Positions 4,384 through 17,000 are shown, counted from the first letter of the stretch. The stretch is DNA of 64,000 nt from Macrostomum lignano (GCA_002269645.1 NIVC01001535.1:92976-156975), one strand, 5' to 3'. Translations and numbers: made by a program. The notes: generated by a model not told the origin, from the sequence alone.

Positions 4384-7300
4384 GCCATTATGCGACAGCG
4401 GCCTCTTACTACAGATGGAGGAGTCTGAATCAATCAGAAGGACGGAACTGCTCAAGCAGTCTTAATCCTGGCTTAAATGTCCACATCAGCGAGGCTCTGG
4501 TGGATATCATGATGTATCTCTGGATGAATGGTAACATTTTAACAATTATATTTCTTGCATGCAATTCCGACATGAGCCTAGGTCTCATACTGCATGTATG
4601 CTAAACTATAGTGGACCCAGGGTATTCAAAGGTTCACACAAAAAATCAGTCGCCACCATTTACCTGCACAAATGTAAACCGAGGGAAAATCCTGCTTATT
4701 AGACATGACTGTTACAGGCAAAGCTTTAACTGCATAGGTTAGGTATTAAAACGGAAAAATGTCGTACGGGAACGGCGATTCACTGGGTGTGCATAGAGAG
4801 TGGGTGTGTATTGGGAATGGGTCATCCGATAAATCATCGGGGGAGGAACGTAGATATCCAGGGTTAGAATCGTGTAAAATTAAAACTTCAGTGTAAGTCC
4901 CATCAGTGGTCACAGCAAATTTTTGATTTTTAAATCGTAATATACGTCTATTAAAGATCATAGCGCTATCCTTCAGAGACAAACAAAAATGTGCCAGAGA
5001 TCTGTGGAAACGAAGTTCGTTTAACCCATTCGGCATTCCTAGAAAACAATGCGGGCAAAGGTAAGCGATTTTGCTACGCTATTTAAAAAAGCGCAATGTA
5101 GGACTTAGAAATACAACAAATAAATTGTATTTTAGTGTGCCTAAATCCGCACAACAACGGCGAAATACGGCTCATCAAATCCTTCCATGCGTTGATGAAC
5201 GTTGAGGCCAAAGTGACGGCTATCGGCAGTGTGCCAGCGATGTTGGACTACAAAGACTCAGGGTCAGCTACCACATACAGAGGCTACTTTGAAGTTGCCA
5301 ATAAACCAATATTGACTTCAGGACCGTCTGTTACTGAAATTGCTTATGTAAGCGGTTTCTATAAATAGTCAAAGGCAATATATATTTACCAAAAACATTT
5401 GTGCAGATTAAAAAAAGCGCTTATTTTTAGGCAGTCTACAGACTTCTAGTGACCAACGATTGGTCCTACGTCGCCATTGTGATCGAAGCTGAGGACGGAG
5501 CAGTGAGGCTGTCCCAAGCTCTACAGTCGATGTCCAAGGCCGATCAGAAAGTCTGCTTCCCGATCGTCATCCAACTCACGTCCAGTAATGCGACGGCAGC
5601 TGCAAAAGCTCTCAGGAACTTCGTGTATCCCGACATTCCCCGACTCACTGTCGTATATTCCGGATCCGGGAGCACATTTCTGTCGCTCTGGGACCTCGTC
5701 ACGGGCTTGGATGCATTGACAGCCGACTTGGAAAAGAGATATCAGCTTGTGCTGGTTGGAGACGCTCTTGGAAGCTTCTACCGAGCGACCAACTCGACGA
5801 GACGGCGACACTTTGGTCTCGGAACACTTTTTGTGTTTCCAGGAGTTCTTGACCCGAATCCGGCGTCGGACAGTCTAGCGGTGCTTCTGAAAAACATCAG
5901 CAGCACACCGGAATCGATGGGAGAGTTTCACCGACTTACGGACACTTGGTCACGACTGCAGCATTTCAAGAGCACAACAAGTGAGCAGTGCGACTGGACG
6001 AAATTCGGTGACCTGTGCTACACCCAAGCACTGATTTACGACTTCCAGCTGCTGTCATTCTTGCCGCTCATTGGCTCCGCCCTCGACTTTTCGCCAAGCG
6101 GAGTGGCGAGTCTCCGCCGGAAGAGCGTCAGTTTGTCGGACCTCCGATCTTTAGTGCCGTTCGTTGACGCGTTTTTGCGGCAAAACTTCACCGACTACTC
6201 ACTCGCCAGAGGCTTGAGCCACAGAGATCGAGGCTTTTGGCAACCGATCGTAAAAGTGTACCAGAGCCGGTTTGATTCACGATCGGAGGCGATCCTGGAA
6301 AAGCTGGGCGAGTTAAGGATAGTGCAGGCCGGCTCAGCGAACCAGAACTACGAGTGGGACTTGAGCACGATGCCCGAGCTGTACGAGTTCAGGGGCGGAA
6401 ATCCTGACAATCTTCCTGTTAAGGCAGTCAGTGGCAGCTCCGTGTGCCCGCGGAGCTGCCCCGAGTGCTCAAAGTATCGAGGCAAGCAGTCTGTTGAGTA
6501 TCAGTTCGGCGACCTTTACATTGGCGCGTTGATCCCAGTGTTTAATAGGGCAACGGATGTGTACAAATGCAGCGACGGGAACTTTGATGAGCAATCGACT
6601 GAGTGGTCTACAGCTTTTCGATACGTTATTAAACTTGCGGCTTGGGCCAGCGAAGGCGGCGCAACTCCACCCCCTGGCGTTGATGCCTCCCTGGTTGATA
6701 AACAGTTCATGCTCGGACTGAGGGACCTAGTCTCGAAGGTTCAGCGGAGTCGGAGTACTAAGCTAAAATGGGGCTACGTAATTCTTGACAGTTGCTATTC
6801 AGCGCCCCTCCTGACGAACAGGCCAGCTTTGTTGCTAAATGGCAAGCTGGAGCCTTTAACTGGGCTTAACTATACCAAGTTCGTAGGCTTTATTGGAGAA
6901 GCCTCCAGCACTCAAACGATGGCGGCTAGCCAGGTGCTCAAGCAATACAGCCTGCCTATTATTAGCTTTGCGTCAACATCAACAGCTCTGAGCGACGTCT
7001 TTCAATATCCGTTCACAATGAGGACAGTGTCATCAGACAACGAGATTATTGAGGCTATGATGACTATACTAAGGCACTACAATGTCGATTTGATTACAGT
7101 TGCTTATGCACCAAACGCTTACGGCTTATCGCTTCGCGACGCAATGTTGACCAGAGCCAACCGAGATGGAGTCTGCATCGCCAAACTGCTGGTACTGAAT
7201 TGCGCTTACACAGATACGGTCTGCAAAAGAAATCTAGCAAACGATATGCGCAGGCCAGGAACTCGATATGTAGTATTTCTATGCGACTCCGTCGACCTCG

Positions 7301-14000: not shown

Positions 14001-17000
14001 GGTGACCTGTGCTACACCCAAGCACTGATTTACGACTTCCAGCTGCTGTCATTCTTGCCGCTCATTGGCTCCGCCCTCGACTTTTCGCCAAGCGGAGTGG
14101 CGAGTCTCCGCCGGAAGAGCGTCAGTTTGTCGGACCTCCGATCTTCAGTGCCGTTCGTTGACGCATTTTTGCGGCAAAATTTCACCGACTACTCACTCGC
14201 CAGAGGCTTGAGCCACAGAGATCGAGGCTTCTGGCAACCGATCGTAAAAGTGTACCAGAGCCGGTTTGATTCACGATCGGAGGCGATCCTGGAAAAGCTG
14301 GGCGAGTTAAGGATAGTGCAGGCCGGCTCAGCGAACCAGAACTACGAGTGGGACTTGAGCACGATGCCCGAGCTGTACGAGTTCAGGGGCGGAAATCCTG
14401 ACAATCTTCCTGTTAAGGCAGTCAGTGGCAGCTCCGTGTGCCCGCGGAGCTGCCCCGAGTGCTCTCATCACAGCGTCAGACAATCCATTGAGTTCAAGCA
14501 TGGCGATATTTACATAGGCGCGATTCTACCAATTTTTGACCACGGCACTGACGAGTTCAAGTGCAGCGATGCTAAATTCGATCTATTCGCATCGGAATGG
14601 TCGGCCGCTTTTAGGTTCATAATGTCGCTGACCAACTGGGCAAGCCAAATGACCGAATTGCCCCCTGGAATTGAAGTTAATCTTGTTGATCAGTCGTTTG
14701 TGCTAGGGTTGAAGGACCTGACTTCAAAGATACACGAGGGTCGTAGCAAGAGGCTCCGATGGGGCTATGTGATTCTTGACAGCTGCTACTCGGCACCATA
14801 TTTGACTAGCCAACTCTGGCTTCTGCTAGATGGAAGGCTCGAGCCAGTTGTTAATGTTAACTACTCAAGCTTTGCTGGCTTCATGGGCGACCTGTCTAGC
14901 ACGCAAACCATGGCCGCTAGTCAGATTCTGAAGCAGTATAGACTGCCAATTATCAGCTTCGGCTCGACGTCTACCGCGCTCAGTAACGTGTTTCAGTACC
15001 CCTACACGATGAGAACTTTGAGCTCAGATAATGAGATTGTAGAGGCCATGATTAGTTCAATAAGGCATTACAAAGTGGACTTAATTACAGTAGTCTACAC
15101 GCCAAATGCCTACGGACTGTCTCTCAAGAATGCGATGCTGTCAAAGGCCAGCAGAGACAAGATATGCATCTCCAAGCAGCTGCTGTTCGACTGCGGAATC
15201 TCCGATCCGACCTGCAAACGAAGAGTGGCTCTTCAAATGCGCAACTCTGGCAATCGATACGTGGCTTTTCTGAGCGACGGCACCGACTTCAGAAATTTTT
15301 TAAACTACCCTCAGGTAAGTCCATCAAGACGTGCACCTATAGTGTTGACTGGAAGAAACAACATTAGAATTAACATCGTGAATGCTAAAATTTACTTAAG
15401 GTGGAAACCGATCTGGAATATGTTACTATCTTTGCAACGGAGGCAATCGATGCGGACTACTTTGACGGCAGGAACAACCTTGGAGTCGGAACCACCATGG
15501 TGCAGCTGGTCTCCGCTCCTGAGCCGGGATTCCTCAACTACCTCAACTACTCGCTGACTCGCATGCCCCCGAACTCCAACAACTTGTCCCAGTGGAACCG
15601 ACTGTACTTCGAGCTGGTGCACCAGTGCTACCTCACGGACAGCTTTGTTCGCAGTGATAAGTACACCCAGCCGTGCTTGCCCAGCATCGTCGCGTCGCAT
15701 CACATCCGCCAGCTCGAGTCCCGATCCGTGTTCGTCATGACGGCGACTCAGACGCTGATCCTCGGTTGCCTGACGGCAATCGACTACTTGTGTCCGGTGG
15801 TGACGCCCGAGCCGGCGTGTCCGAACTTCTTCAAAGGCAACAGAGTCACACAGGAGCAGCGAGCCAACCTCATCATGTACGGCAGCCGGCTGAAGCCGTC
15901 CGGGACCACGGCGCAGCGGTTCTCGGGCAAATACGGAGGCGAGGAGTGGTCCTACCAGAAGATCTTCGAGAACCGGATGGGTCGGACGACGATGCGGCTG
16001 ATGCAGTACCGGAAGATCGGCTCGGCGGAGTACCGCTTCGTGCAGGTGAGTTGATATCCTTTTGACATGAGTAACTACCAAGCAACTTAGTAGCTTAAGT
16101 AGGGATAAAATTTAGATTAAATAGGACTAATACGAGCGTACCGTGAAAGTATCCTTATAACTATAACCGTTGTAACGCGCCGGCAGGTAATGATATTACT
16201 GGTATGAGTGTAGTAGCAGCTGAAACTCCGATAGAAAGAAGAGAACTATTCATATTATAATCGTGAAATACGAGCGGTTGAATACATTGACAGTTGGAAT
16301 AATGGTTATCGGTTGTTTTCAACAAGTGCATTCCATTCAATCCCAATGCACTCTTGCGCCAGTTCGGTCTGTTCGATGGAATCAACAGTTCGACTTTCAC
16401 GGCCGCAGCCGAGGAGCTGTACCAATACGAGCGGCAGTCCAGCTCCAGCCTACTAAAGTCCTGTCGAACTCAAGCAGAATGCGACAGTCCAGAGTGCGTG
16501 AATTCGTTTGGCTCCGACGGCGACCCCGGTTCCGGTATTTCCGGAAGCAACCTGGCCTTGCTGGGGTTGTTGGTGCTTCTGTTTATACCGGGAATCTTAG
16601 CGGGTGTTCTGGTAGCCAAGTACACCGGGAAACCCATTCCTCTGTGGCCCTGCAACTGCGATAGCGAAGCGGACAAAGGCGAGGACTATTACTATTATGC
16701 AGATCCCGAAATTCAGGACTCCACCGTGGCAAATGGATTCGACAATCCCGCTGGTCCCAGGTGAGCGAACTCTCTGGCGGCTTTGAACTGGTAGTTAGTA
16801 GTAAAATTAAGTGTTATAATTACTATAGTACAGTTAATTAATACTATAGGACATAGAAGAAGACCGCACAGAAATATAACCACGGAGACAGAGCTAAGAT
16901 ACCAAGACACTATGAACCCAAAGCAGACATCAGGACAAAAACTACGAAGAATACTAAGACAGAAGGGACTACTAGATTATATAACAAAGTGTTTCTAGTG

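Follow-up and report, generated by a model that had tools for sequence, protein, structure and literature searches.

Two coding stretches of an old tandem pair of receptor-like genes in Macrostomum lignano were probably homogenised by interlocus gene conversion

We examined two paralogous genes, A and B, in a 64,000-nucleotide window (the whole stretch of DNA analysed) of Macrostomum lignano contig NIVC01001535.1. The genes lie in tandem and in direct orientation, 8 kb apart, with an A to B offset of 7,995 bp. Identity between them is 99% and 97% in two coding blocks and 42-65% elsewhere. We consider interlocus (non-allelic) gene conversion between old tandem duplicates, limited to the stretches still similar enough, the probable origin of this pattern (probability about 0.8). 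Recent gene conversion, already proposed in a preliminary description of the locus, is the only reading that fits a drop in synonymous divergence of >30-fold in two sharply bounded coding blocks. The mechanism is a textbook one, a well-known kind of event.

The products of A and B are single-pass and receptor-like, with a weak N-terminal VFT-like domain followed by a class-C-GPCR-type VFT (VFT2). All features of A and B described here are on the + strand. In gene A, three small upstream receptor exons (~4386-4529, ~4977-5060 and ~5136-5347; span 4386..5347), located with their junctions by tblastn of NCBI model P0004, code for the first ~147 amino acids of the N-terminal (VFT1-like) domain and lie outside the homogenised sequence. 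Exon X (5430..7323; 1894 nt, starting in phase 1 and ending in phase 0) codes for the remainder of the N-terminal domain, a CPxSCPEC linker and the first 57% of VFT2. Exon Y (7407..8051; 645 nt) codes for the C-terminal 43% of VFT2, and the last exon (8464..8922) for a stalk, a single TM helix, a short tail and the stop. The limits of the gene A exons, X and Y included, agree with P0004, which is transcript-based. Exon 1 of gene B (11034..11091; UniProt-derived model P0003) codes for a signal peptide (19 residues), and B is therefore a separate gene with its own start. It continues with three small upstream exons that are not homogenised (~12708-12870, ~12955-13043 and ~13120-13328; span 12708..13328), exon X' (13425..15314; aligned to exon X, models P0003 and P0008), exon Y' (15401..16045; aligned to exon Y) and a last exon (16363..16764) with stalk, TM, tail and stop.

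Block 1 (5429..6470 in A, 13424..14464 in B) is 99.04% identical by self-BLAST, with 9 substitutions and one 1-bp gap in 1042 columns; global alignment likewise gives 10 differences in 1042. Block 2 (7494..8057 in A, 15488..16051 in B) is 98.2% identical by global alignment (10 differences in 564, all substitutions), and the self-BLAST match over it is longer (7479-8057 vs 15473-16051, 97.6%). These counts bear out the earlier estimates of about 10 sites in ~1040 bp and about 11 sites. Block 1 has a single indel, the loss of 1 bp from exon X' (CC to C, between 13775 and 13776), which breaks the B reading frame in this assembly; the reading is intact in model P0003, and model P0008 carries the same frameshift.

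Between the blocks lies an unconverted middle. In A (6471..7493) it comprises the end of exon X, an 83-nt intron (7324-7406) and the first 87 nt of exon Y, and contains the mGluR-type pocket motifs SSTQT and STSTALS; in B (14465..15487) it includes an 86-nt intron (15315-15400). Its coding DNA is 62.8% (exon X part) and 64.4% (exon Y part) identical between A and B by global alignment, and its protein 59.2%, close to the ~60% previously judged by eye. Block and middle identity differ with Fisher P = 4e-111 and 1e-67, and the longest identical run between A and B, 277 bp, compares with 97 at most in 10,000 shuffles. The parts reported as aligning poorly do so: the X|Y intron (36% identical) and the 1-kb flanks (42% and 40%) do not exceed chance, and amino-acid identity is 43-45% in the upstream exons and 42% in the tails (last exons). 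With unconverted parts at 43%, 59% and 42% amino-acid identity and introns that cannot be aligned, A and B are old duplicates.

The tract limits are where they had been placed. Block 1 identity begins at the acceptor AG of exon X; block 2 identity stops 6 nt beyond the exon Y donor, those 6 nt being the GTGAGT consensus; and the inner limits (6470/6471 and 7493/7494) fall mid-exon. All four A-B junctions are in frame. Each VFT domain is divided between a diverged and an identical part, so that the blocks are not the clean "scaffold" segments they had been taken for. Differences are not significantly in excess at the tract ends (P = 0.07 and 0.19), and identity runs flush to the splice sites. 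This flush identity counts against a homology-dependent process, which is expected to convert edges less often.

Synonymous and nonsynonymous divergence, a check named in the preliminary description, agrees with conversion. Between A and B, dS is 0.029 and dN 0.0026 in block 1, and dS is 0.047 and dN 0.012 in block 2, whereas the middle has a saturated pS of 0.78 and a dN of 0.30. Even in the most protein-conserved windows of the middle (pN 0.08), pS is 0.93. With dS at 0.03-0.05 inside the blocks but saturated in the stretch that separates them, the mosaic cannot be put down to constraint on the protein. Nor are the blocks inherently slow-evolving, since A and a further paralogue, C, differ within them at dS 1.1-1.8, with 51-59% amino-acid identity. 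Next to block 2, pS is lower (0.62 vs 0.82, P = 0.004), which hints at a once-larger tract that has since eroded.

The same N-terminal-domain segment is homogenised in a second pair. Paralogues C and D lie on one contig (NIVC01000390.1) in inverted orientation, with 183 kb between them. A block of 1,051 bp differs by 1.4-1.9% between the two (dS 0.049) and is followed by a 280-bp stretch at dS 0.12; elsewhere pS is 0.79-0.85 and amino-acid identity 39-49%. Gene segments accordingly disagree on how the paralogues are related: C and D are 96.6% identical in the N-domain segment vs 47% in the pocket part, where A and C are 52% identical. The C-D tract runs right up to the SSTQT pocket motif. A limit of the tract also falls 25 nt inside a C exon, beside the position of a C intron, at a place where D is intronless; in D its 5' limit is away from an exon edge.

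Given this comparison, which is within one genome, we propose the following course of events. A and B would be old tandem duplicates of a Macrostomum-restricted single-pass receptor-like gene, of which two coding stretches (1.04 kb and 0.56 kb) were kept or made near-identical by interlocus gene conversion. A break in one copy would have been repaired from its paralogue on the same chromosome or the sister chromatid, with exchange restricted to stretches that retained enough identity for pairing. The N-terminal two thirds of VFT2, together with the introns and the small exons at the flanks, would have dropped below pairing identity and diverged freely since; because these parts are too diverged, the outer limits would come to lie at exon edges and the inner limits would be abrupt. 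The frequency of gene conversion declines with the distance between partners, and the partners are linked in both pairs, at 8 kb in direct orientation (A-B) and at 183 kb in inverted orientation (C-D).

Base composition follows the tracts. In gene A, GC3 is 0.87 in block 2 and 0.65 in block 1 vs 0.52 in the middle (P = 3e-15 and 0.003); within exon Y alone, the first 29 codons have a GC3 of 0.48 vs 0.87 in block 2. D has a GC3 of 0.78-0.80 in converted parts vs 0.44-0.61 in its own parts (P = 2e-15), and in C the converted parts are not raised (P = 0.15). The rise in the A/B blocks and in D fits GC-biased conversion, although donor composition could account for it as well; the pattern in D is a hint of transfer from C to D.

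VFT2 matches Pfam ANF_receptor (PF01094) with E = 1.3e-27 and 97.2 bits (cut-off 25.4) over amino acids 442-631 of the X+Y product, and mGluR5 (PDB 6n4y) with E = 3e-17; its best solved relatives are mGluR and T1R, not NPR. Ser/Thr, Thr, Asp and Tyr pocket positions of mGluR5 align with VFT2, and A, B and C agree at the predicted core positions for alpha-amino-acid binding (S/T pair, T, D, Y, and R for K). The N-terminal domain (~490 amino acids) is sub-threshold for ANF_receptor (13.6 bits, E = 0.001-0.04) and matches VFT2 weakly by hhalign (E = 0.07). In all four genes (A-D) the last exon codes for a single hydrophobic helix, a ~75-amino-acid tail with no recognised domain, and a stop. Class C GPCR VFT domains are the closest protein family, but not the closest mechanism: those receptors join a VFT to a 7TM domain, whereas A-D join VFT2 to a single TM helix and carry an extra N-terminal domain, and a 7tm_3 match is absent from these proteins. 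Natriuretic-peptide/guanylate-cyclase receptors have a kinase-homology and a cyclase domain inside the cell or, in NPR-C, a short tail in their place; A-D contain neither domain. A full HMMER scan of 1.84 billion representatives with the N-terminal domain returned only the A/B, C/D and E lineages, and full-length relatives solely in M. lignano.

It is possible, but doubtful, that tracts entering the VFT2 pocket were removed because A and B need different ligands, making the middle a selected island of divergence. This reading overlaps with gene conversion and does not exclude it. The preliminary description held that the specificity region was excluded by selection. In line with this, conversion has spared the part of VFT2 that bears the pocket in A-B and, independently, in C-D. 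The C-D tract stops right before SSTQT, and D has pocket motifs unlike those of C (HGSSQTAQ, STAGSLS, SSD lost, Y to F). At the positions that align with mGluR5 E279/G280, residues described in textbook accounts of mGluR, A and B are not alike. The divergence of the middle itself points the other way. Among the unconverted parts the middle is conserved best (59% vs 42-43% amino-acid identity), and its dN of 0.30 with saturated dS puts omega far below 1 and the middle under purifying selection. A selected island would be marked by a nonsynonymous excess or a functional difference at the unconverted sites; here the core pocket positions are kept. The upstream exons and the tail are likewise excluded from conversion, and an island of ~1 kb is of the length of a tract and, once diverged, would be immune to conversion without any selection.

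The positions of the tract limits would also suit a one-off, microhomology-mediated template switch during replication, in which two segments were pasted in by way of short conserved motifs, with no long concerted evolution. Every limit abuts a family-conserved motif (WSYV, CPxSCPEC, NxGxG, GFxG or YRFVQ), and such anchors would allow exchange between copies otherwise ~60% identical. We nevertheless regard this as very unlikely: A-B would have needed four switches, all in frame, and C-D three or more. Loss of homology would itself place the outer limits at exon edges, and the raised GC3 of the blocks and the lower pS beside block 2 favour repeated homology-dependent events, which we infer in preference to a single one.

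Conversion templated by cDNA, which the preliminary description had raised, would have one copy repaired from the reverse-transcribed, spliced mRNA of the other. Both outer A-B limits lie within 0-6 nt of splice sites, as this would have it, and A, B and D are without the intron that C has in the block-2 region (L001 16366-16726). The same limits, however, are expected of a genomic template whose introns cannot be aligned, and none of the tracts extends across an exon junction. Both A and B retain the X|Y intron, and the two versions of it do not align. The C-D tract halts 25 nt short of the C intron position, inside the C exon, where C cDNA would meet no barrier; with D continuous in its coding sequence there, such a stop is the prediction of a genomic template. 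We therefore set the RNA-templated route aside as highly improbable.

Still less probable is an artefact of assembly or polishing, whereby reads of one paralogue corrected the other or the contig is chimeric. The assembly, Mlig_3_7, was made by Canu from PacBio reads and then polished by Pilon with Illumina reads and with RNA-seq reads, which reach exons only (PMC5730564), and ~70% of the assembly is present as three copies ~2% apart (PMC10733133). Variants of D match different C copies in a patchwork, and a 1-bp indel persists in block 1 of B. Short reads, however, could not be placed on a target of ~60% identity; polishing only sharpens blocks already more than ~90% alike, and the mosaic stays. 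Nineteen A-B substitutions survive, and two of them, protein-changing in block 1, recur in models of a differently built assembly (B-specific R and S in three B models, K and L in three A models), an agreement that is not fully independent because ML2 and Mlig_3_7 were built on the same PacBio reads. All four junctions are in frame, the mosaic of A is in a transcript-based model, and the C-D pair, homogenised in the same segment with a 5' limit in D that is not at an exon edge, argues against an artefact and shows that the pattern recurs.

Equally hard to credit is that the middle is the replaced part, the whole X-Y unit having been recently homogenised and one copy's middle then taken from a third, diverged paralogue: this would give the same identity profile, diverged short intron included, but known proteins include no such donor (the HMMER scan of 1.84 billion representatives gave the A/B, C/D and E lineages and no others), searches of a 5.8-billion-protein database found a middle like that of A or B in A alone, and the 59% amino-acid identity of the middle fits what the remaining unconverted parts show relative to C.

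If the blocks are the product of gene conversion, their divergence dates it. The three subgenome copies of C differ at dS 0.033-0.035, and a divergence of 1.1% has been published for M. lignano CDS copies (PMC10733133). The last A-B homogenisation is thus of about the same age as the split of the three subgenome copies, at ~1-2% divergence, figures that are lower bounds, as polishing of Mlig_3_7 may have erased true differences inside similar blocks.

The case resembles the GOT1 paralogues of Tigriopus californicus (PMC3728101), which are linked, have exons kept alike around an unalignable intron and diverged islands within homogenised coding sequence, and include one partner with a broken frame despite conversion. 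It differs in that the A/B background is far older (synonymous sites are saturated), two stretches rather than most of the gene are homogenised, the products are receptor-like proteins and not enzymes, and A/B are known from one genome. In a model of Arabidopsis halleri HMA4 (bioRxiv 10.1101/2025.10.29.685298), tandem copies likewise become mosaic as the conversion rate varies along the gene with exon/intron structure. Whereas the HMA4 duplicates are young and in an early phase, A/B and C/D are old and appear to have reached a late, eroding phase, and C-D is not tandem (183 kb, inverted). The human RHD/RHCE and red/green opsin genes, textbook cases named as such in PMC3728101, are neighbouring paralogues too, and partial conversion between them leaves function-determining segments different. 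The functional role of the unconverted sites is demonstrated there, whereas A and B, as judged from sequence, share the core pocket residues.

Partial gene conversion misleads gene trees and the dating of duplicates: from the blocks alone A/B and C/D would be dated as recent duplicates, although their synonymous sites outside the converted parts are saturated. In M. lignano genomics, paralogue blocks as similar as subgenome copies (1-2%) will confuse read mapping, variant calling, RNAi/CRISPR design and expression estimates for these genes. The case also records a lineage-restricted family of double-VFT, single-pass receptor-like proteins in which the same domain segment was homogenised in two independent pairs. 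It offers the idea of a shared module as against private ligand pockets. It is conceivable, if unlikely, that the homogenisation is exploited functionally. On that view the VFT1-like domain would be held identical over its C-terminal two thirds, in A/B and independently in C/D, and paired receptors would cooperate, for example as heteromers that have a common dimer interface or partner and differ in their ligand lobes. Conversion would then let a shared module evolve in concert inside each pair, with divergence to 51% from one pair to the other. Such cooperation would be akin to the way class C receptors work as heteromers.

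Two paralogous receptor-like genes, A and B, lie in tandem on the + strand of the window, a piece of the genome of the flatworm Macrostomum lignano that the annotated product P0004 assigns to contig NIVC01001535.1 of assembly Mlig_3_7 (GCA_002269645.1). The receptor exons of A are at ~4386-4529, 4977-5060, 5136-5347, 5430-7323 (exon X), 7407-8051 (exon Y) and 8464-8922; B has a signal-peptide exon at 11034-11091 and further exons at ~12708-13328, 13425-15314 (X'), 15401-16045 (Y') and 16363-16764. The translation of X plus Y matches a UniProt M. lignano protein at 100%. The NCBI annotation contains a single A and no B, and exact-protein look-ups for genomic copies of the A-B locus elsewhere, made with the ML2-derived B models P0003 and P0008, returned no contig. 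In the NCBI model of A (P0004), a 1,499-residue protein, three FN3-like exons (3-389, 2018-2269 and 2678-2938) are fused upstream of the receptor, the second and third being 79% identical in DNA (2013-2276 vs 2676-2936). Unlike this model, B and the further paralogues C and D each start with their own signal peptide and lack FN3. The joining in A may reflect a true fusion, or else a polycistronic/trans-spliced unit annotated as a single gene.

Self-BLAST and global alignment confirmed almost exactly the two near-identical A-B blocks claimed in the preliminary description. Block 1 (5429-6470 vs 13424-14464) differs at 10 of 1042 positions (99.0% identity) and block 2 (7494-8057 vs 15488-16051) at 10 of 564 (98.2%). 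The coding DNA between the blocks is 63-64% identical, the short intron (83 nt in A, 86 nt in B) 36%, and the 1-kb flanks 40-42%, which is chance level. The contrast between blocks and middle is strong (Fisher P = 4e-111 and 1e-67). No identical run exceeded 97 bp in 10,000 shuffles; the longest one observed spans 277 bp. The limits also stood as described: the blocks start at the AG of the exon X acceptor and end with GTGAGT just past the exon Y donor, and both inner limits (6470/6471 and 7493/7494) fall inside exons. Differences were not significantly more frequent at the tract edges. Amino-acid identity runs from 43% in the upstream exons through 99.4% in block 1, 59% in the middle and 97.3% in block 2 to 42% in the stalk, transmembrane (TM) helix and tail; the blocks are outliers along the gene, and among the unconverted parts the middle is conserved best.

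A second pair shows a comparable mosaic. An exhaustive HMMER scan of 1.84 billion representative proteins with the N-terminal domain gave five matches, all from M. lignano, among them D (PAA84059.1, BOX15_Mlig025594g1); two word-indexed protein searches gave 3-4 matches each, missing C and/or D. C (BOX15_Mlig019918g2) and D lie 183 kb apart on opposite strands of contig NIVC01000390.1 and are an old pair, with identities of 39% upstream, 47% in the pocket part, 49% in the C-terminal part of VFT2 (the class-C-type Venus-flytrap domain) and 27% in the tail (pS 0.79-0.85). Within the C-D mosaic (L001:14185-15640 in C vs L005:11020-12500 in D), a common block of 1,051 bp carries 15-20 differences (1.4-1.9%; dS 0.049) and occupies the same segment of the N-terminal domain as block 1. 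Beyond it come a 125-bp diverged island, a 280-bp stretch (dS 0.12) that ends immediately ahead of the SSTQT pocket motif, and then saturation; as an intermediate-age tract, the island did not differ significantly from unconverted sequence (P = 0.07). Because the same segment has been homogenised in two pairs that differ in locus and orientation, an assembly accident is a very unlikely source of the mosaic, and the process recurs in the family.

Synonymous divergence (Nei-Gojobori) is low in block 1 (dS 0.029, dN 0.0026) and block 2 (dS 0.047, dN 0.012) and saturated in the middle (pS 0.78, dN 0.30). This contrast, with its sharp boundaries, favours sequence exchange, in line with the gene conversion proposed earlier. 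Sliding windows across the most protein-conserved part of the middle, which holds the pocket motifs, gave pN 0.08 yet pS 0.93; strong protein constraint in A and B therefore does not entail DNA identity. Purifying selection as the source of block identity was rejected on these grounds, synonymous sites being identical in the blocks and saturated in the most conserved middle windows. Compared with the third paralogue C (BOX15_Mlig019918), the blocks show dS of 1.1-1.8 and 51-59% amino-acid identity, and so are not intrinsically slow. Unequal crossing-over fails, as it would bring introns and flanks along and leave a single junction for each event; the junctions here number four, all in frame and flush with exons.

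We put at roughly 80% the probability that the mosaic arose by interlocus gene conversion limited to stretches with enough identity to pair, most likely in repeated events. Conversion between A and B would occur only where retained identity still allows pairing; stretches gathering substitutions and indels (the introns, the small flanking exons and the N-terminal two thirds of VFT2) would have dropped out and then been immune. Such loss of homology would set the outer limits at exon edges and make the inner limits abrupt. GC3 reaches 0.65 in block 1 and 0.87 in block 2, against values of 0.39-0.62 across all the unconverted coding pieces of both genes. The jump takes place at the block 2 boundary, inside a single exon (7407-8051; 15401-16045), where the first 29 codons have GC3 of 0.48/0.55 and the remaining 186 of 0.87. 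The pS beside block 2 is lowered (0.62 vs 0.82, P = 0.004), which suggests a formerly larger tract. In D, GC3 is 0.78-0.80 in converted and 0.44-0.61 in unconverted stretches; C shows no such contrast. The GC3 rise and the low pS fit repeated GC-biased events, but neither is decisive, since C lacks the contrast and the pattern in D could mean that C was the donor.

The preliminary description further proposed that selection had excluded the specificity region from conversion. The A-B comparison does not bear this out: the middle is under purifying selection and not unusually diverged, and its aligned amino-acid-binding positions are mostly common to A and B. A, B and C agree at the positions aligned to the residues by which mGluR5 binds the amino acid (the S/T pair, T, D, Y, and R for K), and pocket-aligned differences between A and B fall only at the E279/G280 positions of mGluR5. 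Selection may nonetheless have kept this region out, since neither A-B nor C-D shows conversion of the pocket part and the pocket motifs of D differ from those of C. Nor are the blocks neat scaffold modules, as had been supposed: both VFT domains of A and B are split into a diverged N-terminal and an identical C-terminal part.

A cDNA template, also raised as a possibility, is disfavoured by the introns. The tracts cross no exon junction, and the X|Y intron, a phase-0 intron inside VFT2 that is absent from C and D, is kept in both A (7324-7406) and B (15315-15400). The C-D block starts 25 nt inside a C exon; the tract halts beside the C intron position, where D is uninterrupted, a pattern that a genomic template accounts for but a cDNA of C would not. 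D (L005:10924-13551) also lacks the intron preceding exon X. Another phase-0 intron of C (361 nt, L001:16366-16726), ~100 codons beyond the A/B intron, is absent from A, B and D.

The sole indel in block 1 is a 1-bp deletion in B (CC to C) between 13775 and 13776 (5781 in A), which shifts the frame 116 codons into exon X' in assembly Mlig_3_7 (GCA_002269645.1). The frameshifted reading also occurs in UniProt A0A1I8JFM5 (P0008); A0A1I8GXT3 (P0003) reads through intact. B is represented here either by a young pseudogene copy or by an unpolished consensus error within the duplicated block.

The A-B and C-D blocks differ by 0.9-1.9%, close to the divergence among subgenome copies: the three subgenome copies of C show ~1.4% difference across the entire locus (dS 0.033-0.035, g1 vs g2/g3), and coding sequences of the three M. 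lignano genome copies by 1.1% (PMC10733133). The last homogenisation would accordingly be of roughly the same age as the subgenome split. In block 1, three B gene models carry the two B-specific residues (R, S), and three A models the corresponding A states (K, L); of the 17 Cg1-Cg2/g3 differences, D has the Cg1 variant at ~10 and the Cg2/g3 variant at ~7. Both agree with this dating, but such fine-scale counts need caution, since Mlig_3_7 is a Canu assembly of the PacBio reads that also underlie ML2, Pilon-polished with Illumina and RNA-seq reads (PMC5730564), and polishing may have partly smoothed true differences in near-identical blocks.

VFT2 is a genuine ANF_receptor domain (97 bits), its nearest VFTs being mGluR5, mGluR1 and T1R (E = 3e-17). 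The ~490-residue N-terminal domain gave sub-threshold ANF_receptor matches (E = 0.001-0.04) in three of the five paralogues and, over the lobe-2 motif, a weak match to VFT2 by hhalign (E = 0.07); searched as a profile against PDB sequences, it returned nothing meaningful. Judged from these sequence matches, and in keeping with the label VFT2, the domain probably represents a first VFT that has degenerated. The predicted structure of the A ectodomain (5-row alignment) had too low a confidence to be used (mean pLDDT 34.8, pTM 0.28). The proteins end with a single TM helix and a short tail, and are therefore neither class C GPCRs nor guanylate-cyclase receptors. The five known lineages (A to E) are all from M. 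lignano, and in current databases the double-VFT single-pass architecture appears limited to this lineage.

The A-B mosaic is real and cleanly demonstrable, and exon-restricted conversion with islands of divergence is already well documented. The RH and opsin genes are known examples. Like A-B, the Tigriopus GOT1 paralogues combine exon-restricted conversion, unalignable introns and islands of divergence (PMC3728101), and the HMA4 tandem copies provide a further case (bioRxiv 10.1101/2025.10.29.685298). None of the papers searched connects M. lignano with gene conversion. New here is that the same segment recurs across two pairs, in a lineage-restricted receptor-like family and a neopolyploid genome.

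Elsewhere the window is dense in satellite arrays, which lie at 570-1561, 17010-17245, 20623-22236, 30788-31116, 35376-36084, 38895-39473 and 41533-43105. They include a 22-bp array within an intron of annotated gene A, four (AGAC)n arrays (the first directly downstream of gene B) and two arrays of 1.6 kb each, one CT-rich with a 14-bp unit, the other with a 35-bp unit and higher-order periods of 416/451 bp. The A-B spacer holds an inverted repeat (9181-9336 vs 9506-9661; ~156 bp, 78% complementary); another, made of short repeats (48841-49141 vs 49336-49636), has 301-bp arms that are 97% complementary and 194 bp apart. A CYFIP-type gene occupies 43429-45848 on the - strand (Pfam FragX_IP, E = 1e-163); on the + strand, an ORF at 54529-55305 encodes a C-type lectin domain (E = 4e-7).
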